A stretch of DNA of 14,183 nt, from contig BAAFSQ010000255.1 of the NCBI GenBank assembly GCA_054661495.1, forward strand, positions 1 to 14,183. Direction: 5' to 3'. Below are positions 2,220 to 13,435 of this stretch, one piece after another. Numbering within the stretch: position 1 is the stretch's first letter; each line of letters starts with the position of its first letter. This DNA is from Zygophlyctis sp. KS116 (taxonomy: Eukaryota > Fungi > Chytridiomycota). The notes under the pieces are model-generated. The model worked only from the letters and a program-made list of their open reading frames with translations, did not search any database and was not told the DNA's origin. Both the position numbers and the translations under genes were made by a program.

Positions 2220-3395
2220 TTAGAATGAAGCTGGTTGAATCCAAAAAGGACCATAAGGAACTTCTAATAAATCATCAGATTTCATCCATTCATGTAGGGA
2301 TATTGAATTATTACTTGCCATTTTTGAAAGCATATTCCACGCTCTCTGTGATTCTAAATTATAATCACTTGAGATCCAACTGATTGCCTTTAAATAATGA
2401 AAAAGAGACCACATCTGCGGCTTTTTTTTCAAGACGGTTACATAGTAAGCATGTGCATTTTTAGCGCATACAAGTCTAGTATTTTCATTAGAGTATAATC
2501 GAATCCTAGATAAGTGAATATCTCCCAATTTAATCAGAATTTCCAAATTCCTAGGCTCAATTTGTGAAGCTTTTGTAAGGTACTCTAGTGCCTCTGAATA
2601 CAAATTGACTGATTGAGAAGTTTTAGAGATTTGAAAAGCTAAATCAGCCCAAGAAATACATAAATCAGCTCGATCGCATAATCCTTGTATATGATTTGGT
2701 TGCCTATTTAGAACATTGTCAATATATCCTAGAGAATTTGAAAACAAATCTGAATCCAAAACTCCTGTAATCTGAAAAAGTTTAAAGGCGATTATATGAT
2801 AACTTTCCGCAATCCTTAAAATTACATCAGACTCTGAAGACTCGTGATAAATAGCAGATATTGACTTGAAGGTTTCTTGAATGTAAGTGATATCATTGGA
2901 ATACTCCATAATTGAATTTAAAATTTCAATCCGTAGTATTAACTGATCAGTCTCTGAAACAGTCAAAGTTTCACTGTTTCTTGATTGAACTTCCTTGATC
3001 TGATCTAAATACCATACTGCTTCATTCAACTTTATAATATCTGGTTGAGACTTTGTAACCAAAGAATGTATGGTTTGTGCAATATTGAATAAAACATCTA
3101 CATTTTCAGATTCTACAGATGCAAGTTTTAAAAACTTTTCTAATGCTTGAGATAGCCAAATGCAAGCTTCATGATTACTTGTCTCTGGATTTTTGAATTC
3201 TGAAAGTATAAATAAAATGCGAGCCCAACTGCTCAAAACTTGTGGTAGATCTTGTTCATTTTCATTAATTTGAGAATAAATTTCGCATGATCGAATGTAG
3301 AACCTTTTCGCTTTCTCACCATCAACATATCTATCCCCTTTTTCTTCTAGTTCCTGTGCATTCTCTAGTAGTTGTTCAAGTTGATCTAATTCCAT
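2220..3395 (-). CDS. TPR-like all-helical protein, 391 aa, function unknown
   Basis: Long uninterrupted ATG-started ORF with TPR-like segments (LYSEALEYLTKASQIEPRNLEILIKLGDIHL; ENVDVLFNIAQ). The N-terminal EEKGDRY..EKAKRFY resembles, from memory, an uncharacterised fungal TPR-like family (UPF0656-like, unverified). Confidence 0.75.
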   Translation of the reverse strand: MELDQLEQLLENAQELEEKGDRYVDGEKAKRFYIRSCEIYSQINENEQDLPQVLSSWARILFILSEFKNPETSNHEACIWLSQALEKFLKLASVESENVDVLFNIAQTIHSLVTKSQPDIIKLNEAVWYLDQIKEVQSRNSETLTVSETDQLILRIEILNSIMEYSNDITYIQETFKSISAIYHESSESDVILRIAESYHIIAFKLFQITGVLDSDLFSNSLGYIDNVLNRQPNHIQGLCDRADLCISWADLAFQISKTSQSVNLYSEALEYLTKASQIEPRNLEILIKLGDIHLSRIRLYSNENTRLVCAKNAHAYYVTVLKKKPQMWSLFHYLKAISWISSDYNLESQRAWNMLSKMASNNSISLHEWMKSDDLLEVPYGPFWIQPASF

Positions 3396-3529: not shown

Positions 3530-3585
3530 ATCGTGAAATTCCCCGTTTTTAGACGCGCTGCAATCAGTAGAATTCATTGCATTAC

Positions 3586-5510
3586 ATGTTTCGCAAGAAT
3601 AGCTTACTGCTGCTATTCCTCTTTTCTGGAATCACATTTTTAAACCTTTTTATGCTAACAAAAAATATGAATATGATTCATGATAAAAAAGTCTCGGCAC
3701 CAGTTGAAAGTATTCCAGTTAAGTCCGATAGACCTGAAACTACTGTAGAATTATCAATAGTTGCTGCATGCATGGATAGAAATGACGACTTGATAAAAAC
3801 GGTTGATTCTTGGCTTGGTTCGTTAAGTCGAACCAAAATTTCTGCTGAAATTATTATAGTTGATTGGTCATCTAAAGAATCAGTTCAGAAAACTCTCAAA
3901 GTCAATAATATAATTGATTCAAGATTAATACACGTTCAAGTAGTTGGGCAATCAAAGTGGATTCTATCAAGTGCATATAATATTGGAGTTAACTTTGCTT
4001 CCACATCTAAAAATCTTTTAAAGTTGGATTGTGATACATTTATTGAAAATAATTTCTTTCTAGTTCATCAAATAGCAAATGATTCATTTTACGCTGGAAA
4101 TTTTAGAATGGCTGAAACGGAAAACGACATGCATTTAAATGGTGTAGTAATGCTTCCAATCAACGCATTTATGAGCGTTGGAGGTTATGATGAGAGGATT
4201 CAAACTTATGGTTTTGATGATGATAATTTGTATGAAAGATTAGTGGATAATGGATACAAAAGAAATGATTTCTATAAAGGATATTTAAAACATTTGCAGC
4301 ATAATGATAGACAAAGATCTTTGAATCAGCCAGAATTACAAGATGATTTAGATATGGAAAATCACTTAAATCATGCTGCATTAGGAATGTTGCCAAAATG
4401 GACTCGAATGAATCAAAAAACCATATACTCTTCTAGAAAAATCAATAATAATCATCATGTAGTATCAATTGATACGATACCTCCTTCTATCAGAAAAATA
4501 ATTAAACAAGGAGACATTGATTATATTCGATTTCAATATTGTCTTAGGAAATTAAAACAATTAGGACTTCCTAAATCAATGCTGAATAACCGAGGTGATT
4601 TGTCAAATTACAAAAAACTTTTAAAGACTTATTCAAAAGGACCAATGATTATTATTGATGTTCAACATGGTACTTTTTATAAACTTAATTTTTAGGACTG
4701 GGAAATCGTCTTCGATCTCTGGCATCTGCCGCAATAATAGCAAAGAAATCTGGACGGCATTTAAGAATTATTTGGAAGCCTGATCATCATTGCAAAGCGT
4801 CTTTTTATGATCTCTTTGACAAGAGTCAAAATTTTGATGTCTACGATTCCATTGATAAAAAAGAATTATCCAATTCTCAAATTAAAGTCTACAACTATAT
4901 GGAGCCTGAAAAGGGAGCCATAAAGTATGAAAAAATTGAAGCGGATTCAGACAAGCACATCTATGTCAAGAGTGCATACATCTTATCAAACAAACTTGTC
5001 AAAGAAACACACATTTCCTCATTTTTAAAACAACTCATTCCTTCAGAACCTGTTCAAAGGATTTTAGATTCATATCCAGATATTTCTGACTGTATTGGCG
5101 TTCATGTCCGAAATAAATCGCCCAATGGTGAAATAAAGTTGAAGCCCAATGAATATCCTAAAGATGGATGGAATGATCTATCTAAATATCGCAAAGCATC
5201 AAATATAGATGTGTTCATTAGGAAAATGCAAGAAATTATAGATGATGATCCGACTGCATGTTTTTTTGTTTCAGCGGACTCAGAAAAGAGTAAAACGTCA
5301 ATTCAAAGTAAATTTGGGACTGGTCGTGTATGGATACTAGAAGGATCTTGTGATGATCGGAGTGTTAGATGTCTGCATGAAGCACTAGCAGAATTATACA
5401 TTTTGGGTAGAACAAGAGCAATATTGGGTAGCTTTTGGAGCTCATTTTCAGAAGTTGCAGGATTTTTAGTAGGAAAACGGCCACTTTACGCAGGAAAAGA
5501 TTTCATTTAA
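3586..5510 (+). CDS. Predicted type II membrane bifunctional glycosyltransferase: GT-A (GT2/GT7-C-like) domain plus C-terminal fucosyltransferase-like GT-B domain, 632 aa; exons 3586-4669, 4696-5510
   Basis: N-terminal hydrophobic anchor (LLLLFLFSGITFLNLFML); GT-A motifs IIIVDWSS, LKLDCD (DxD) and GGYDERIQTYGFDDDNL. The 26-nt intron 4670-4695 joins QHG|LGNRLRSLASA in frame with ORF 4899-5510, which has GVHVR, FFVSADS and ELYILG...LGSFWSSFS (alpha-2/alpha-6/O-fucosyltransferase superfamily motifs I-III). Confidence 0.85.
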
Positions 5511-5518
5511 TTTATAAA

Positions 5519-5830
5519 TTATTGCTTTTTGATTGATCGCAACTGTTTCTTCTTCATTCTTTTGAGTTTTCCAGCAGATACTTTCTGGATCACTTCTGCC
5601 TTTCTTTCATTCTCTGCTTTTCTTGCCATTCTTTGTTCTTTTAGAGCTTTTGCAATTTCTGCCTCTTGTTCTGCTTGTGCCACATTTTCCCTCTTGATCA
5701 ATTGCAAGATTTCCCTATTCTTCCTTTCCTTTTGCTGTCTCTCCCATCCCCTTTTGCTTACGATGCTTGAACTTGATCTTTTAGTCTGAAGAGTCTTCCA
5801 ATCTCTTCCTGATACACAATTCCCCTTCAT
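5519..5830 (-). CDS. CGR1: Cgr1/CCDC86-like nucleolar rRNA-processing coiled-coil protein, about 103 aa
   Basis: SGRDWK, WERQQKER, ENERKAEVIQKVSAGKLKRMKKKQLRSI match the Cgr1 family pattern. ATG 5830 is preferred because the 5935 start overlaps the DIS3 CDS. Confidence 0.82.
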   Translation of the reverse strand: MKGNCVSGRDWKTLQTKRSSSSIVSKRGWERQQKERKNREILQLIKRENVAQAEQEAEIAKALKEQRMARKAENERKAEVIQKVSAGKLKRMKKKQLRSIKKQ

Positions 5831-5894
5831 TCTTTGATAAGATTTAAAAAATTTTACTTGCGCCCTACAACTCAATTGTAATAATGTTTTTATT

Positions 5895-8800
5895 TCAAAT
5901 CTTGAGTTTTTTATTAGGTTGTTGAATTTTTTCATCTTGTTCTGGTAGACTAAAGCCTGGCATGATTGGATCTGTCAAAATTAGTTTTAATTTACTCCTT
6001 TGAGCTGCAGCAATTCCTGCTTCTTCTATTGAAATTTGAACTTGCACTTTATCAAAAAGTTTGATAGTGATATTTTCCCAAGTTAAATGAGTTGTGGAAG
6101 ATTGAAAGTTGAAAGATGCCGTGTCGAGGGAATGGGCATACACAATTCCTTCAATTCCATAAGTAGGAATAATAACATTAAATCCATTCTTTAAAATTCT
6201 GATGACATAGGCAGTTTCTTTAAGTTTCTTGTCTTTAAAGAATAGATTAGTATATAATTCTACGGATGATCTTGAAGCCTGTTGGGCCATTTGATGTCGA
6301 TAATTTAAGACTCGGCACATTTCTTCACTCTTGATTTTATCCATAAAATCTGCACTAGTTTTTTTCTCGTAACCAATGGATGCTGCAAGTAATCTATGAA
6401 CTACCAAATCGGCATATCTTCTAATAGGAGATGTAAAATGAGTGTAAATTTCAGACGCTAAACCGTAATGACTATTTTTAATTTGAAAAAAAATACCGAT
6501 ATTCAGGTTCAGATATAGTACCTGAACAAAAATAGACAGCTTGCATCATGCATCGAGTCGTCATGATTCTGACCAGATTGTTGAAATAGGGGTCAGAAGT
6601 AATCTACACATTGATAAAATCAAATCTTACATTAATAGAATCAAGGGAATCTGCCAGACTTTTTGAATTTGTAGCATTTAAAGAAAACCCTTTTTCAAAT
6701 AAGGACTTTTGTAGAGCTTCAAAATTCGTTATCGGGGGTTGAGGATGTCGACTTATTGAGTTAGAAAATTATCCTTACCGTAAGACAGAGGATTCGGGGT
6801 AGCTTTTATGAATTTGTTTTGCTACATAAATATTGGCCAACAACATAAACTCTTCTACCAAAGCGTTCGCATCTTTCAATTCTTTCATTTCCACATCTAC
6901 AGGATCTTGAGAATCCTTTTCTAATTTGAATCGCACTTCTGGCGATGCTAAGGTGAGAGCTCCTCGTGCAATACGACCTGCACGAAGCTTTTTAGCAATT
7001 CTATTTAAAACCTTAATTCCTTTAGATATTGAGTCATCCATTTTTGGATCATCCAATCTAGCTTGTGCTTCATCATAAGTTAAAGAGGCCTTGGAGCGAA
7101 TAATGCTTTTGGTAAAGCGAACATTAATTATTTCCATTTTAGGACTAATTTCCCAAATGCAAGAAAAGGATAATCGATCGACATTACATCTCAGAGAACA
7201 CAGATTTGTACCCAGCAGCGAAGGAAGCATATCAATTCTCTTGTCGACTAAATAGACTGTTGTTCCTCGACGCTGAGCTTCCAAATCCATTTCATTCGCC
7301 GGTTTTACAAAATGGCTAACATCTGCTATATCTTATGTTTAAGCTAAAAAATCTTACGGACACCGACTTCATAATTTCCATTATCCAGAATTAAGGCATG
7401 CAACGCATCATCAATATCTGTACAGCCTGGAGGATCTATACTACAAATATCTAAGTGACGAAAATCTTCTCTATTTATCAAATCTTCATCACGAACAACC
7501 CATGATTCCCCTTCAGCCGGTAAAAAGCTCAGAACCTTTTGAGAAAATGGACTGAATGGAACATCATGCTCGAGTAGTAATACTTCTGTTTCTGTTGATC
7601 TTTCTCCAACGTCTCCCAAAACTCGCACGAAATGCCCAGAAGGATACCTAATATTAACAGTGAATTTAATACCTGGAGTGTTTATCCCAAGAATCAATAG
7701 AAACAATTACCCGCTTTCCCAACAAAGATAACGCTTGTCTGGTTCTTATTCTGATTTTTGGAATACGACGGTCCATTGCCCAAAAGAAGACAAACTGCGC
7801 AGATGTAGTACTGGGAGTCAACTTTACAGATGATTTATCTATTGTTCCACAGTATGGTCTCCATTTTCTTTTTATGACACCAACTATTCTCCCAGTAGGC
7901 TTTAAAGACTCGGCTTTTGTTGTATTTAAATTTGATTCCACCAACGCATCTAATGAATCTTTTTTAAACCCTTCAGCATCTTCTTCTGCATCCTCTTGTT
8001 TTTCCATTACTTCTTCCTCTACAGCTATCGAAATATCTTCTTGCCATTCTGATTCGGGAAAAACTTGCATCGCTACAATGTCCCCATGAACTGCACGATT
8101 TAAATTCTCTCTCCCTATTATCCGAACAGTAGTCTCAGTCCCATTCCATTTGACAAACATTGAACCCTCCAAAAAGTTATGATTACTAATTGAAAGTGTT
8201 CCTTGATGAAATGCACCAGATTTTAATCCAGCCGAAATTTGACTTGAAGTCAAGTGATCATGATATCTAAAGATTTCCTTTTCAATATCATCTTCAGAGG
8301 CAGCAATCATATCAATCAATTCAGGATATTCTGTTTTGGATTCAACATATTTTTTTACTATTTTTAAGAAACTTTTCTTGTACCTGAAAAAACATCCAGA
8401 CCTTCCTTTTCACCCAACATACGATTTTCCACATCATCAGTCACCAAAACTACCGAGTAGTCAATTGGAATATGATTTTTATACCATTGAACAGCCATTC
8501 GAATCGCTAAGATAAGCATAATTCCAAAAATACCTTGATCATTCCTATCATTAATGCTCTGTGACTTTTGCTTTTTAATATATGTTTGACTATTATCAAT
8601 TAGAAGTAATTCATACAAGTGATGTTCATTAGAGAAAACATAAAATCTTTTTTCAGGATCAGCAATAAGAGCTCTAATCCGATTATACACAGCCAAGCTT
8701 CTATTTCTTAATTCTTCCAGGGTAGTTTGAAGCACAACCACATTATATATTGCTTTATGCTCCATTATATCAACCTGATGATACAGAATATTTGTATCAG

Positions 8801-8966
8801 GAATCATAATTTCCTTTTGATCAGTTGTAAGTGTTGTTGCATGATCCGGACAATGATTGCATTCTGGTATCCCACAGTATATATCATCCCGCAAGTAATG
8901 CTCTTTAACAACCTTGATTACAGATCCTCTTTTAGTTTTCCGAATAAACGACTTTGAAGAGAGCAT
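5895..8966 (-). CDS. DIS3: Exosome catalytic subunit DIS3/RRP44 (PIN, CSD, RNB, S1), 953 aa; 9 exons: 8966-8617, 8589-8534, 8506-8384, 8357-7673, 7647-7358, 7331-6779, 6751-6631, 6603-6497, 6471-5895
   Basis: [14 protein letters not shown] (CR3); PIN motifs PDTN, DRND, TDD; RNB motifs [47 protein letters not shown]. Eight GT-AG introns (8590-8616, 8507-8533, 8358-8383, 7648-7672, 7332-7357, 6752-6778, 6604-6630, 6472-6496; 25-27 nt) give a continuous 954-codon frame. Confidence 0.97.
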
Positions 8967-9175
8967 CAAATTCAATCAGGGCTCAAAAGTGGCGTAAAGA
9001 TCTTGTTATATTTTGACTGTTTGAGTGTTTACTATAGTGTGCATTAGCTTAAAGCCTTTTAGTAATCTTGGAATAATAACGATCATGATATATTTACATG
9101 AAATCACCACTGCTATCACCACTTAGAGTGGCCAATGTCTGAAAATGGAATTTGTTTAGGTGTTGATTAGTAAAA

Positions 9176-9985
9176 ATGATCTTTCAATATCTTGTTATTG
9201 CATATTTTGGATATTATGTGGAATGCATTGATCATGATATTTCTCTTGGTAAACCCCCATTTATGGCACACTCTCCTGCTTTCTTAAATCAGGTACCGAC
9301 AGTAAAGAATGGGTTGCCAAAGCCTAAAGATGGAAGATTACGATTACCACATTTGCTCGACAACTCTCTAAATTCTTGGGGAAATGATATATTACCCAAT
9401 ATTATTTCTGTAGGAATCAATCGCTACAAGATTTCAAAGTTTAGCGGAAGTGGGGATGAAGGCAAAGTGTTTGAAGGATATGATTTATCAGATCCGCAAA
9501 GAGAGTCTGTAATTATAAAAATATTCCATCCTAGAAGTAAAAATATGGATATTTTGATTTCTTTTCTAAATGAAAAACGGGCATTATTGTATCAATCAAG
9601 GCTAATACAAGCAGATGAAAAGTCTCAAATAATAGTCTCCAAGAAAATACAAGGAAAATTGCTAGATGCATGTATTAATGATCTTATTATGAACGAGGAA
9701 TATGAAAATGTGGCAGATTTGTTGTACAAGTATTTGGATTTGCTTCCATGGTTTCGCCAAACTTATCATTTAGTTCATGGAGATGCACATCCAAAAAATG
9801 TAATTGTTGATAAAGATGGAATTTTACATTTGATTGATTTTGGGTTTACCGTTCGGCTTTCTAATGATAGTGCAGTAGCAGAAACTCAAATTGAGAACGA
9901 TGACTCTATAATGATGCATTGGGCTAATTTTTATTTAAAGTTTATGGAGTCAAGAGTTCATGGGATTGGCTGGGATAACTTTTAG
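9176..9985 (+). CDS. Putative secreted minimal (atypical) protein kinase-fold protein, 269 aa, catalytic motifs intact
   Basis: Signal-peptide-like MIFQYLVIAYFGYYVEC; Gly loop GSGDEGKV, VIIK, helix-C Glu (FLNEK), catalytic loop HGDAHPKN, LIDFG; only 46 aa after DFG and no APE motif. Confidence 0.8.
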   Translation: MIFQYLVIAYFGYYVECIDHDISLGKPPFMAHSPAFLNQVPTVKNGLPKPKDGRLRLPHLLDNSLNSWGNDILPNIISVGINRYKISKFSGSGDEGKVFEGYDLSDPQRESVIIKIFHPRSKNMDILISFLNEKRALLYQSRLIQADEKSQIIVSKKIQGKLLDACINDLIMNEEYENVADLLYKYLDLLPWFRQTYHLVHGDAHPKNVIVDKDGILHLIDFGFTVRLSNDSAVAETQIENDDSIMMHWANFYLKFMESRVHGIGWDNF

Positions 9986-10102
9986 ATTTAATTACTAAAC
10001 TACTACATTTTTAATCAGTACTTCCACGCATTTTTGAATTCCTTGATCAACAAACGATCAAGCCATTGTAGCTGAGGGCTGAAATCATATTGCTTGATTA
10101 TC

Positions 10103-11607
10103 ATGATTTTTATGTCCCTTGTGATTGCTCTCTTATCAATTAACCATGCAATGTATAAGATAATTTACTGATCAAACAGAGCATTTGAACTGTTGCCATT
10201 TGCAATGCACCGAGGACTTTCTCCCAACATTCTTCCACCGCCGAATAGAATTGGAACACAGCTTTCGCTAAAGGAAAATAATAAGGAAAGCTTTGGGTCG
10301 AAAGTAAAAAAACTTTGTATTAATGTTCAACTTATGTCATAATGGAGTATGATCAATTGGAAAATAAACGTTTACTAAAATCTCTTGGGAATGCGGATGC
10401 AGATCTAAATTTCCCTTTTATTGTGCGTTTTGGAGATTCTCGTAAACTAGATTTTACAGTTACCAAACGTATAAATGTAGATTCTAGTAGTGTTTTGTAT
10501 CTAGCTTATCGCTTAAAAGGGCAATGGAATGAAAGAGTTCCAGTTGTAATCAAATCGTATAAGGCTGGCTCAAATACCTATAGGGATTTTATAAGTGATC
10601 TTCATTTTTTTCGAAAGGAATCAAGGATTATCACTGTGGATTTCCAACATTGTAATATTGCGCTCGTGAAGATGAAGGGGGTTCAAGAGTTTTATCAAGG
10701 GGAGGAAGGCTTGGTAGAACCGAAATTTGAGTCTTTATCAGCTGTAGATGACGGGGATGATCATGGATTAAGTAGTGCTAAAGATTCTAGTTTAGATTCT
10801 GAAGAAGTGGAGGCTCAAAATATATCAAATGAATTCGCAGACTCTGATAATGATTCAAAGAGTTGGGAAATTGATAATCAGGAGCGATTTCAAAAGAAAA
10901 TTCAATTAAGGGCTGCTGCTGAAAGTCCATTACATAAGAAATCAAACTTTTATGCAGATGATAATATTTTGGGCACCAACCAGTTCTCTACAGAGTCTTT
11001 AGAAGACTCCGATTCAAAAGCAGTGATTAGATCTTTGTGGAACCCGACAAAAATTACGCTTCCTTTAACAATAATGATAAGTGATGGTACTGGAAAGGAA
11101 GAGTTTATTGTCAAAGAAAAGGTTGGAATTAGTGTCAAAGGGGCAATATATAAGGGTTTCTTTTCAAATACACCTTCAAGGATTTTGGTGCTTAAAGTGT
11201 TTCGTGGTAGCACTAAGATGGAATCCTTTAAAAATGAAACAACTGCATTATCCAAACTCTCAAGGCTTGTAAAGGCTGATCATAAAAATGCACTGATTGT
11301 AGAATCCAGTGGTGAAGGACCATTTATAATTGATGTTTGGTCAGAACTCAACAAAAATAAAGAGTCTGAAAAATTCAAAAGTCTTTTGCAGAAATATCAA
11401 CAGATTCCAGAAGTTTTAAAAGAGAAATATGGTGTAATTAATGTCAATGTTCAACCGTATAATGTTGTTGTTGATAATGAAGAAAATCTTCACGTATTAG
11501 ATTTAGATGGAGTTAGATTACTTGATGCATCGAATCAGGAGGATGAAGTTAAAGGAATTAAATCAACGGTCGATAGCGAGGAAGCTCGTCGGTTACTTTT
11601 TGTATAA
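10103..11607 (+). CDS. Putative secreted pseudokinase paralog (signal peptide, isolated N-lobe, acidic linker, degenerate kinase domain), about 483 aa; model exons 10103-10152, 10180-10316, 10343-11607
   Basis: Leader MIFMSLVIALLSINHAIA mirrors the neighbour's MIFQYLVIA; clean 27-nt GT-AG intron 10153-10179. The C-terminal domain aligns to the neighbour (LVLKVF/VIIKIF, SFKNE/SFLNE, SRLVKAD/SRLIQAD, LLQKY/LLYKY, NVVVD/NVIVD) but has NVNVQPYN and DLD. The junction near 10304-10347 and the 3' end are uncertain. Confidence 0.65.
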
Positions 11608-11744: not shown

Positions 11745-13345
11745 TTATTGCTTTCCTCTTATTCTAATTGATAATTCCTTCAAGATACTTTTAATGTCTT
11801 CTCCAGAGCCTCCAAGAACCGATGAGTTCTCCTGGGCTCTACGATGCAGATATGGTATGGTAACTTCGACTGGACCATAGGGAATATACTTTTTTGAGTA
11901 AAAGAAAATGGTACCTTATAAACTTTTACTCCCTTTGATGCCAATCCATAAGTTGTTTGGTCTTGCATTCCCATCAACTGAGCAAATGAAACTGTTCCAT
12001 CAGATGCATTTATTTTTGGGTGCATGTCCAACAGCTTGTACACATGGTCAATCGAATTTTTATTATGGGAGGCAACTACGAATCGAAGCGTTTGAATTCG
12101 ACTAGATGTAGAAGATGATTCAGCTACAGATTCCATTAGAAATTCACAAGCCTTGTTAAATGACTTGTGTGTATCTTCAATTGTATCATTGATTGGTGAA
12201 GGATATTTGAATTCCTTTGCTCGATCTCTTTCGGATACCATATACGCCCCACGTACAATTTTCACACCAAAGGAATATTTTAACCGTTTGGCGAGAACCG
12301 TATCAGAGACAAGCCTTTCATATGCATCCTTTAGATAAAGCTGATAAGTATTATAAATCAGAGCATATTTCATTCTAGAATCACCCGACTGGCTTAATGG
12401 GACATTGTACTTTTGACAAAGTCTAAGCGCAATATCATCTATTGCAGGCTGAAAATAAGTTTGCTCTGCATCTATCATGATGCGTACTTTTTTAGTACTA
12501 GCATAATCACAAACTTTCTCCAACTCCTTTAAAACAAGTTGTGCAGTCTCTATATCATCAAAAGTAACATAATCTTTTCCTTCAATTACAATTGCCTTTG
12601 CAAAATTTTCATTATGAATAGTCATTACTGCCGACAAATCAAGCCAATCAATAAATCCATCCTGATCATGGTCAGCAGCAGTAAATATTTCATTGCAAAC
12701 ATTTTCAGTTAATGCAGGAAAATGCACTGATAACCTTTGTAAATCAGAAGCTGTAATCTTATTGTTTTGAAACTCTTGGGCAAAAACCGTCTTTAAATGA
12801 CAGAGAGAGGATGACCATCTTTGAAGAATTCCCGGAGGAACAAAAGCCGTCACCTTTAGTGCAATAAAATTCCCTGGCTGTGCAGATGCAATATCAATAC
12901 TTTCATTCATCATCACTGCTATTTTTAAAGCAAAATCTTGTGCCTCCTTTGCCGATAATGTCTTTCCGTCCAAATCAGCCTCCATTGCTAAATCCAAAAT
13001 TGATCCAATATTAGATTTTTTAAATGATTCAATTGTTGGAATGACTTCTTTCAGATTTTCTCCTCCGCAAAAATGATTAAAGAATGTAGCTTTAATCATT
13101 GAATAGAAAGGTCTTGATAGTCCCAACCTTTTAGAAGTGTCAATCAGAACTGGTGTTGAAGCAACCAATGGCTTAATTCTACATAATTGAAAAACAACAA
13201 AAGAATTCAAGAGTTGTAAACTTGCCTTGTTCTGATAAGGTCTCAAATTTGGATCATTGAGGGATGATGCATTCCTTATTGTATATGAGATCGGATGCAT
13301 CATTACCTTTTTAGAATACAGAGACTGACATGAATTGCGAATCAT
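11745..13345 (-). CDS. PUT1: Mitochondrial proline dehydrogenase (proline oxidase) with EF-hand-like insertion, about 524 aa; exons 13345-11915, 11888-11745
   Basis: FFNHFCGGE, IMIDAEQTYFQPAID, YNTYQLYLK, GVKIVRGAYM, VASHN, FAQLMGM. The 26-nt intron 11889-11914 restores VYK|YIPYGPV..IPYLHRRAQEN. Basic presequence-like N-terminus from ATG 13345 (AAAAAAAATG context); alternative ATG at 13366. Confidence 0.93.
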
Positions 13346-13435
13346 TTTTTTCTTGTTAAGCCACATGTATCCATTATTTCCACCTCTGACAATCAATCGG
13401 ACAAGTGTTTCAAGAGATTTTTATTGCATGATGTG

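Follow-up and report, generated by a model that had tools for sequence, protein, structure and literature searches.

What role could two neighboring genes of a chytrid fungus share when one encodes a leader-bearing, kinase-like protein with all of its catalytic residues and the other encodes a paralog in which the catalytic aspartate has been replaced? The question is raised by a stretch of 14,183 nucleotides from Zygophlyctis sp. KS116 (contig BAAFSQ010000255.1, here C255), which we call the window and which is the entire contig in an assembly of 12.7 Mb (1175 contigs, ~34% G+C). A first-pass annotation had read the two genes, gene 1 at 9176-9985 and gene 2 at 10103-11607, as a tandem secreted kinase and pseudokinase pair and as a candidate effector module. 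The two belong to an undescribed family of minimal, non-RD, kinase-like proteins that is poor in cysteine, lineage restricted, and expanding in tandem, and gene 2 represents an old pseudokinase branch of that family that is selectively maintained and not decaying.

Two paralogous genes

Gene 1 (9176-9985) is a single uninterrupted open reading frame (ORF) with no intron that encodes 269 residues and ends in TAG, and gene 2 (10103-11607) has three exons, a spliced product of 483 residues, and a TAA stop; both genes, and all of their features given below, are on the plus strand. The spacer from the stop of gene 1 to the start of gene 2 is 117 bp long (9986-10102), and compared with L032, a sequence 96.3% identical to the window over 9.8 kb, it shows 10 differences and 3 gaps over 115 aligned bases. 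The two co-oriented genes are paralogs, as had been supposed: reciprocal whole-genome searches aligned them at 30-31% identity, with E values of 2.9e-14 and 2.8e-13. Both open with the similar leaders that the first-pass annotation had described, MIFQYLVIA in gene 1 and MIFMSLVIA in gene 2, followed by PFMAH (9257-9271) and PFAMH (10196-10210), respectively. The hydrophobic leader of gene 1 covers residues 1-17 (9176-9226) and is a putative signal peptide, judged by its sequence and hydropathy. Each of the two mature proteins contains one cysteine.

A kinase fold with a truncated C-lobe

The kinase-like domain of gene 1 (9371-9964) matches the family profile, which was built from 15 domains (alignment A1), with 263 bits. 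Every catalytic motif that had been ascribed to this gene was located: the GxGxxG loop at 9446-9469, the lysine of VIIK at 9509-9526, the glutamate of NEKRAL at 9566-9586, the catalytic loop HGDAHPKN at 9776-9799, and DFG at 9833-9847. The scores against Pfam models lie close to the cut-offs. Pkinase (PF00069), at 27.6-27.8 bits, stays below its cut-off of 31.7, and its match ends at DFG (profile positions up to 154 of 263); RIO1 (PF01163), at 21.2-21.4 bits, stays below 22. Three models pass: PK_Tyr_Ser-Thr with 24.2-24.5 bits against a cut-off of 23.1, ABC1 with 23.2-23.5 bits against 22.9, and APH (PF01636) with 26.0-26.2 bits against 23.2, with the APH match confined to the surroundings of the catalytic loop (residues 180-225; profile positions 148-197 of 239). 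Gene 2 has no Pfam match at E<=1, and at the same threshold neither gene matches Fam20C or OspG_kinase (PF22303). Searched against PDB, the family profile matched PknB, PAK1, TTK, CK2, ABL, and LegK4 at E values from 1.9e-13 to 1e-9, over the N-lobe through DFG only (up to position 176 of 240).

AlphaFold2 (AF2) modeled the core of gene 1 with a confidence score (pLDDT, the predicted local distance difference test) above 90, as a five-stranded N-lobe, helix C, helices D and E, the catalytic loop, DFG, and then a single long helix. The N-terminal stretch that precedes it (9227-9370; mature residues 1-54, pLDDT ~36) is disordered. Structure searches with gene 1 returned kinases only. Foldseek against PDB gave PRPK/Bud32, Rio2, and LegK4 at E values of ~1e-8; an exhaustive structural aligner ranked LegK4 (Z 15.2), Rio2 (14.6), OspG (14.0), Bud32 (13.7), and NleH1 (12.9) within a kinase-fold range of 12.5-15.2, with ordinary kinases within about one to two Z units of the best; and a predicted-structure atlas gave template modeling (TM) scores of 0.57-0.68. 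An activation segment with APE and the C-lobe helices F to I were found neither in the profile matches nor in the AF2 model of gene 1. The HRD arginine is likewise missing, since gene 1 reads H-G-D and the family consensus is H-[GN]-D (non-RD). No ROP chain appeared among the 60 best PDB profile matches or the 50 best structural matches.

From the profile, the AF2 model, and the structure searches, we therefore assign the family to the protein kinase fold, with a truncated C-lobe and no Pfam model of its own. Profile and Foldseek searches with the predicted structures returned kinases for gene 2 as well as for gene 1, in agreement with the kinase reading of the first-pass annotation, and they showed no orthology to any conserved cytosolic kinase family. 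Gene 1 holds every residue needed for phosphotransfer, and its C-lobe comprises about one helix after DFG.

Known compact kinases resemble these proteins in part. The best structural match, the Legionella effector LegK4 (PDB 5ckw; 185 residues aligned, Foldseek E value 3.4e-8, profile E value 1e-9), differs by a large helical C-terminal extension, and its 20-23% identity does not imply orthology. Rio1/Rio2 and Bud32/PRPK, the top matches of both Foldseek and the structural aligner, share the compact fold and short C-lobe, but they are universal cytosolic or nuclear housekeeping enzymes, whereas the present family is leader-bearing and lineage restricted. PknB (PDB 4eqm, 1mru) is the closest by sequence profile (E value 1.9e-13), yet it has HRD, an activation loop, and a full C-lobe, all three of which the present family lacks. 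A truncated C-lobe and the lack of an activation loop are shared with OspG (PDB 4q5h; 160 of 169 residues aligned at 3.3 A) and NleH1 (PDB 4lrj; 152 of 160 residues at 3.1 A), which are also alike in size and topology, and language-model features place an OspG cluster close to the family. Unlike OspG and NleH, the present genes are eukaryotic, with introns and leaders of the endoplasmic reticulum (ER) type, and are not type III substrates; the Z scores for these two effectors, moreover, tie with those of many ordinary kinases.

Enzymes this small might act on small molecules rather than on proteins, in the manner of APH and choline kinases, with a metabolite, toxin, or antibiotic as the substrate. 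Their H-G-D-x-H-P-x-N loop is of the APH/ABC1 type, the APH model lies just above its cut-off in gene 1 (26.2 against 23.2 bits), Choline_kinase (PF01633) matches 4 of 15 family members, and there is neither an activation segment nor a lobe for protein substrates. However, every one of the best profile and structure neighbors phosphorylates proteins or peptides (PknB, PAK, LegK4, Rio, Bud32, OspG, and CurKC, a lanthipeptide kinase), the top 50 include neither an APH nor a choline kinase, and the Pfam family matched by most members is Pkinase (11 of 15, best E value 5.5e-10). We regard action on small molecules as highly improbable.

An old and maintained pseudokinase

The product of gene 2 starts with a leader, which is followed by a free-standing kinase N-lobe, then an acidic linker, and finally a full degenerate domain. 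Searches and folds of gene 2 were run on exon 3, and the joined protein was used only for residue numbering and a local profile scan. The N-lobe module (residues 81-175; 10396-10680) matches family-profile positions 7-98 only, and in the AF2 model it folds alone, as five strands and a helix with pLDDT 85-93. The linker (10681-11025; residues 112-216 of exon 3, pLDDT 31-61) is unstructured in the model and differs from that of L032 by 11 nonsynonymous changes and 1 synonymous change. The C-terminal domain (residues 299-482; 11050-11601) matches the family profile with 197 bits and is modeled at pLDDT 82-94, and Foldseek places it with LegK4, RIOK2, and CK2.

The losses and retentions that had been noted in this C-terminal domain were all located. 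It keeps the beta3 lysine (LVLKVF, 11185-11202), the helix-C glutamate (FKNETTAL, 11227-11250), the catalytic-loop asparagine, and the DFG aspartate. Its Gly loop (11122-11151) is degenerate; INVNVQPYN (11437-11463) stands in place of the HxD...N loop, with asparagine at the positions of both the catalytic aspartate and the histidine; and VLDLDG (11494-11511) gives DLD in place of DFG. Orthologs of gene 2 carry Ala/Met or Ser at the catalytic aspartate. A pseudokinase is a kinase fold that lacks at least one of the VAIK lysine, the HRD aspartate, and the DFG aspartate (PMC4718504), and gene 2, in which the catalytic aspartate is gone while the lysine and the DFG aspartate are kept, is a pseudokinase by this definition. 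Because the lysine, the glutamate, the asparagine, and the DFG aspartate all persist, the domain probably still binds nucleotide.

A maximum-likelihood tree built from 74 family domains places that of gene 2 in a five-member clade (the window, P0003, L030, P0052, and P0075, each on a separate contig), with a support of 100 in the Shimodaira-Hasegawa-like approximate likelihood ratio test (SH-aLRT). All five have lost the catalytic aspartate, and all five keep the asparagine and the DFG aspartate. Gene 1 lies in a separate clade of six (support, 91). Degenerate domains arose elsewhere in the tree too, where the second domain of C17-A groups with P0007 and the domain of C17-B groups with P0017 and P0045; these two genes are taken up below.

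With L032 as the comparison partner, the ratio of nonsynonymous to synonymous substitution rates (dN/dS, or omega) of gene 2 is 0.33 over the whole gene (P=1e-4 against neutrality), 0.26 in the pseudokinase domain (P=0.004), and 0.07 in the leader exons 1 and 2. The neighboring genes, described in the last section, give 0.20 for PUT1 (P=2e-7) and 0-0.34 for the exons of DIS3. The first-pass annotation had allowed that gene 2 might be untranscribed and evolving neutrally; its omega differs significantly from neutrality, and stretches of the sequence occur in RNA libraries. The ratio for gene 1 is 0.73 (P=0.30), compared with 0.20-0.34 for its neighbors at equal synonymous divergence. Against its counterpart in L032 (4821-5630), at 4% DNA divergence, gene 1 (9176-9985) has 32 residue changes, which are spread out, with none in the catalytic motifs. 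The core of gene 1 is under long-term constraint, since a 52%-identical ortholog keeps all of the motifs.

The exon structure of gene 2 contains one irregularity. The gene is continuous only after the removal of two tiny introns, the size class of which matches that of the six introns in DIS3. Exon 1 (10103-10152) holds the hydrophobic leader, MIFMSLVIALLSINHA, which starts MIFMSLVIA and is conserved in L032 and in L031, a 92%-identical relative. The intron that follows (10153-10179; 27 nt, GT..AG) contains an in-frame TGA, and both relatives retain its GT..AG. Exon 2 (10180-10316) includes PFAMH, and exon 3 (10343-11607), for which P0003 is 93% identical, is an ORF that runs to the TAA stop. 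The 26-nt second intron between them (10317-10342) reads GT..AA in the window, where position 10342 is A; it is G in X2 (depth 125) and X3 (depth 226), which are near-identical metagenome populations, and in L031 and L032. Because these four sequences read AG, the A is private to the window assembly and reflects either variation in the strain or a mistake in assembly. There is an in-frame GT..AG alternative of 44 nt at 10304-10347, the use of which would remove six residues and which is a possible rescue splice in the window strain. As the ancestral second intron of gene 2, it was rejected, since relatives have the canonical 26-nt GT..AG at 10317-10342.

The lost acceptor, GT..AA in place of GT..AG, is what a pseudogene decaying in the window strain might show. 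Decay would nonetheless have had to spare the reading frame, which is intact throughout, and it fits poorly with an omega of 0.33, with the AG in X2, X3, L031, and L032, with an alternative splice that costs only six residues, and with the chance that the A is an assembly error. We consider a decaying gene 2 extremely improbable.

An undescribed family with a narrow distribution

The first-pass annotation had predicted a lineage-specific family, and what emerged is restricted, expanded, and tandemly arrayed, with N-terminal hydrophobic leaders. In the fungus's own genome, the family profile detected 12 domains, distributed over 10 genes and 8 loci (on contigs C255, C17, C624, C46, C354, C187, C66, and C43), all at 92 bits or more, compared with 46 bits for the best generic kinase. 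Tandem pairs occur on three of these contigs, C255, C17, and C624.

A word-index protein search returned only 2 relatives for gene 1 and 1 for gene 2, and an exhaustive profile search that took in 1.84 billion representatives was used instead. It found 62 library representatives at E<=1e-30 and ~85 that combine an H-[GN]-D-x-x-P-x-N loop, instead of HRD, with a profile match past DFG; after the family members, the next matches were long multidomain bacterial-type HRD kinases. For 23 relatives the source was checked; each belongs to a metagenome or run assembly in ENA, JGI, or Logan, and one is also in NCBI. By motif, full domains numbered 84 with all four catalytic residues and 21 in degenerate form, and there were 14 N-lobe-only modules; these counts are upper bounds that include some bacterial-type non-HRD kinase domains, and 2 of the 14 N-lobe-only modules sit in bacterial-type proteins. 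We found no description of such a family in the literature on chytrids or other early-diverging fungi. The family escapes standard annotation, with Pfam scores at the cut-offs, leaders on micro-exons behind 26-nt introns, and relatives that are only metagenome proteins.

A subgroup of ten relatives (P0033, P0048, P0050, P0053, P0055, P0056, P0058, P0068, P0071, and P0098) has the catalytic loop H-[GN]-D-[ILV]-A-P-R-N, the A-x-R-N ending of which recalls the tyrosine kinase signature HRDLAARN. An origin in giant viruses, prompted by language-model neighbors, was considered and set aside, as gene 1 found no relative on viral contigs in a scan that sees close kin only.

Gene order and a possible coupling of dead and live members

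Do the degenerate and active members keep company outside the window? The window and L032 share the order DIS3 (minus strand), gene 1, gene 2, and PUT1 (minus). On L030, the 52% relative, the order is an active member, the gene 1 ortholog, one or two N-lobe modules with the pseudokinase, another active member, and PUT1 (minus). L033 has the N-lobe and pseudokinase and then an active member, and L035 has DIS3 (minus) and then an N-lobe module fused to an active domain of the gene 1 clade. On L034, the N-lobe and pseudokinase are followed by a Reeler-domain gene (minus) and an N-lobe module (2952-3191), with no active family domain seen on the contig. Of the DIS3-PUT1 synteny that had been proposed for checking, L032 shows both flanks, L030 the PUT1 flank with extra members, and L035 the DIS3 flank.

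The dead gene adjoins active members across lineages that have diverged to ~50% identity (the window, L032, L030, and L033), and the array gains and loses members. The PUT1-flanked locus on L030 (1-4910) holds at least four family genes, compared with two in the window. The fusion on L035 (1357-2337; P0010) joins a gene-2-like N-lobe to an active gene-1-clade domain at gene 1's DIS3-side position, which hints either that gene 1 lost an N-lobe module or that domains shuffle between members of the array.

Dead and live domains also occur within one protein. C17-A, of 655 residues (L002:235-2199; C17 ~72623-74587), combines a leader and an N-lobe-only module with two further domains, one degenerate (H-Q-N, I-N-F) and one motif-complete. 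Its ortholog P0007 has the same leader, N-lobe, dead domain, and live domain, and C17-B, a second degenerate family gene, lies directly downstream of C17-A. The conserved adjacency and the C17-A/P0007 fusion would fit a functional coupling, and with moderate confidence we suggest that dead and live members work together.

The pair might instead be uncoupled paralogs that are neighbors only through an old tandem duplication, with the pseudokinase doing a job of its own as a binder or decoy. Consistent with this, gene 1 and gene 2 are not closest relatives (30% identity) and fall in separate old clades. The active neighbor also varies in position, upstream in the window, both upstream and downstream on L030, and downstream on L033, and on L034 the dead gene is accompanied only by an N-lobe-only module, with no active family domain seen on the contig. 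Independence accounts less well for a pseudokinase that adjoins at least one active member wherever the flank suffices, or for the fusion of dead and live domains in C17-A and P0007, and we judge it distinctly unlikely.

Leaders and predicted export

A short N-terminal hydrophobic leader is present in 9 of the 10 genes in the fungus's own genome (curated models), and the L030 orthologs of both window genes have one; the leader of P0002, the 52%-identical gene 1 ortholog, is much stronger and lies at the same position. About 20 metagenomic relatives with a complete N terminus carry a leader, compared with 2 of ~25 generic kinases in the same match list. In gene 2, C66, C17-B, and C624-2, the leader is on a micro-exon or is cut off by a tiny intron. 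Hydropathy showed no second hydrophobic segment, no C terminus of the K/HDEL type was found in these proteins, and the cysteine content is 0-1.3%. These features would fit cleaved signal peptides on proteins that are independent of disulfides, and the proteins are, with moderate confidence, predicted to be exported. The PFMAH/PFAMH sequence was considered as a host-targeting motif and rejected, because it has not been retained in the L030 orthologs (P0002), which are 52% identical.

The hydrophobic stretches could also be membrane tethers, signals for another organelle, or artefacts of the gene models, in which case the family would comprise intracellular signaling kinases that are not secreted. 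The absence of a basic n-region, the weakness of the gene 1 leader, and the many called proteins of metagenomic relatives that show no leader are what such kinases would lead one to expect. Those leaderless relatives, however, are presumably for the most part truncated calls from prokaryotic gene finders blind to 26-nt introns, and leaders occur in 9 of 10 curated models and in the orthologs of both genes, some of them on dedicated micro-exons kept across relatives, and are almost never present on generic kinases in the same match list. Intracellular kinases are in our view quite improbable.

Proposed role

Chytrid parasites help control phytoplankton blooms, and to our knowledge almost nothing is known of the molecules that they use on their hosts. 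For the present family, we tentatively propose that exported minimal kinases phosphorylate host proteins and that the pseudokinase is an allosteric partner or scaffold for the neighboring kinases, a proposal to which we would give somewhat less than an even chance. The leaders would act as signal peptides, and both proteins would leave the cell via the ER. The active minimal kinases would then phosphorylate host proteins at a site beyond the fungal cytosol, the likeliest being the interior or surface of an algal host cell, and the conserved pseudokinase, which can probably still bind nucleotide, would serve the adjacent active kinases as an allosteric partner or scaffold. Host (algal) proteins are suggested as targets, at lower confidence than export or coupling, because of the narrow distribution, the tandem turnover, the fast evolution of gene 1, the scarcity of cysteine, and a size like that of bacterial effector kinases.

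Several observations weigh against this proposal. The omega of gene 1 is not distinguishable from neutral (P=0.30), and tandem duplication alone could account for the adjacency of the genes. The leaders have no basic n-region, and that of gene 1 is only moderately hydrophobic (19-residue Kyte-Doolittle mean, 1.13). No conserved translocation motif was found in these proteins, PFMAH being missing from L030. The RNA evidence consists of three short unspliced metatranscriptome contigs (9208-9357, 10351-10522, and 10828-11086), none of which spans an intron, from runs that were picked with the window sequence.

The main rival explanation is that the kinases are self-directed, enzymes of the secretory pathway or cell surface that act, in the ER/Golgi lumen, on glycans of the fungus or on proteins that the fungus itself secretes, builds into its wall, or uses for adhesion, with the pseudokinase as activator. 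The same leaders would serve in both cases, and the lack of a host-translocation motif suits this alternative. ATP is scarce outside cells and is available in the ER/Golgi lumen, which also counts in its favor. The logic of kinase plus pseudokinase is that of metazoan Fam20C and Fam20A, where the pseudokinase Fam20A binds nucleotide and activates Fam20C allosterically (PMC5413348, PMC4421857). The likeness extends to paralogous partners and to a routing through the ER, which is putative here, but Fam20 proteins are large and disulfide rich, whereas the present proteins are small, with 0-1.3% cysteine, and do not match the Pfam Fam20C model. Without a membrane anchor or retention signal and with few cysteines, they are also unlike the disulfide-rich Golgi kinases (PMC5413348). 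Among source-checked representatives, the family is confined to a narrow uncultured lineage and is not seen in the conserved secretory machinery of fungi, and its fast evolution and tandem turnover are further points against the self-directed alternative, which we hold to be unlikely.

The other precedent named in the first-pass annotation was the set of secreted kinases of Toxoplasma, in which the pseudokinase ROP5 is needed for the activity of its active partner, ROP18 or ROP17 (PMC3493473, PMC3393671, PMC3682881). Here too the family is lineage specific and expanded, with leaders (putative signal peptides in the present case), a mixture of active and pseudo members, tandem arrays, and fast evolution. 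It differs from ROP kinases in having no sequence affinity with them beyond the kinase fold, in lacking most of the C-lobe, in being non-RD, and in containing free-standing N-lobes. Both precedents, ROP18/ROP5 and Fam20C/Fam20A, stand as analogies of logic only; the functional parallel can be kept, and membership in either family cannot. CRN8, an oomycete Crinkler kinase effector, has a LFLAK/HVLVxxP Crinkler N terminus and an RD kinase domain, neither of which is seen in the present proteins. It resembles them as a secreted eukaryotic kinase of a filamentous parasite that is delivered into host cells, secretion and delivery being putative in the present family (PMC3426532, cited in PMC4746824).

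If the proposed host-directed role is correct, exported kinases with conserved dead partners become concrete candidate effectors in the parasitism of phytoplankton by chytrids, and cooperation between kinases and pseudokinases would have a further, independent example besides those of animals and Apicomplexa. With catalytic domains so small and N-lobes that stand alone, the family could, moreover, reveal the minimal kinase needed for activity and regulation. A more specific and more speculative version is a self-contained allosteric set, in which minimal kinases without a substrate lobe are switched on or aimed by exported pseudokinase and N-lobe partners, whether fused to them or encoded alongside, and are delivered into phytoplankton by the fungal parasite. 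Taken as a whole, this version has in our estimate only a slim chance of being right. If true, it would be a convergent fungal counterpart of ROP18/ROP5 that uses an isolated kinase N-lobe as a regulatory domain, and we found no such use of an isolated N-lobe described in the literature.

Neighboring genes and other features of the window

Genes are densely packed across the window, and the standard genetic code is used. The introns, of 25-27 nt and with GT..AG borders, are Paramecium-like in size, and a ciliate genetic code was considered for this reason; it was rejected since TAG, TAA, and TGA all terminate genes, and long ORFs without in-frame TAA or TAG also contradict it. Metagenomes of freshwater, lakes, and estuaries, from 16 studies in all, contain the window sequence or close variants of it. 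The genome is rich in division-2 chitin synthase genes.

On the two sides of the pair lie DIS3 (5519-8975, minus strand), which is interrupted by six tiny introns, and the proline dehydrogenase gene PUT1, the ORF of which occupies 11780-13396 on the minus strand. PUT1 has an EF-hand pair inserted within its catalytic domain (Pfam EF-hand_7/8, residues 210-258), an arrangement also seen in the L030 relative and in atlas clusters from several eukaryote groups. Farther upstream, an ORF at 3577-4695 (plus strand) contains a Glyco_transf_7C domain of the beta-1,4-galactosyltransferase type, the family of which is more familiar in animals than in fungi. At 8269-8286, the X2 and X3 contigs each show an additional 18-base match on the reverse strand, after which comes a loose end; this points to a short inverted repeat with a copy elsewhere in those contigs.

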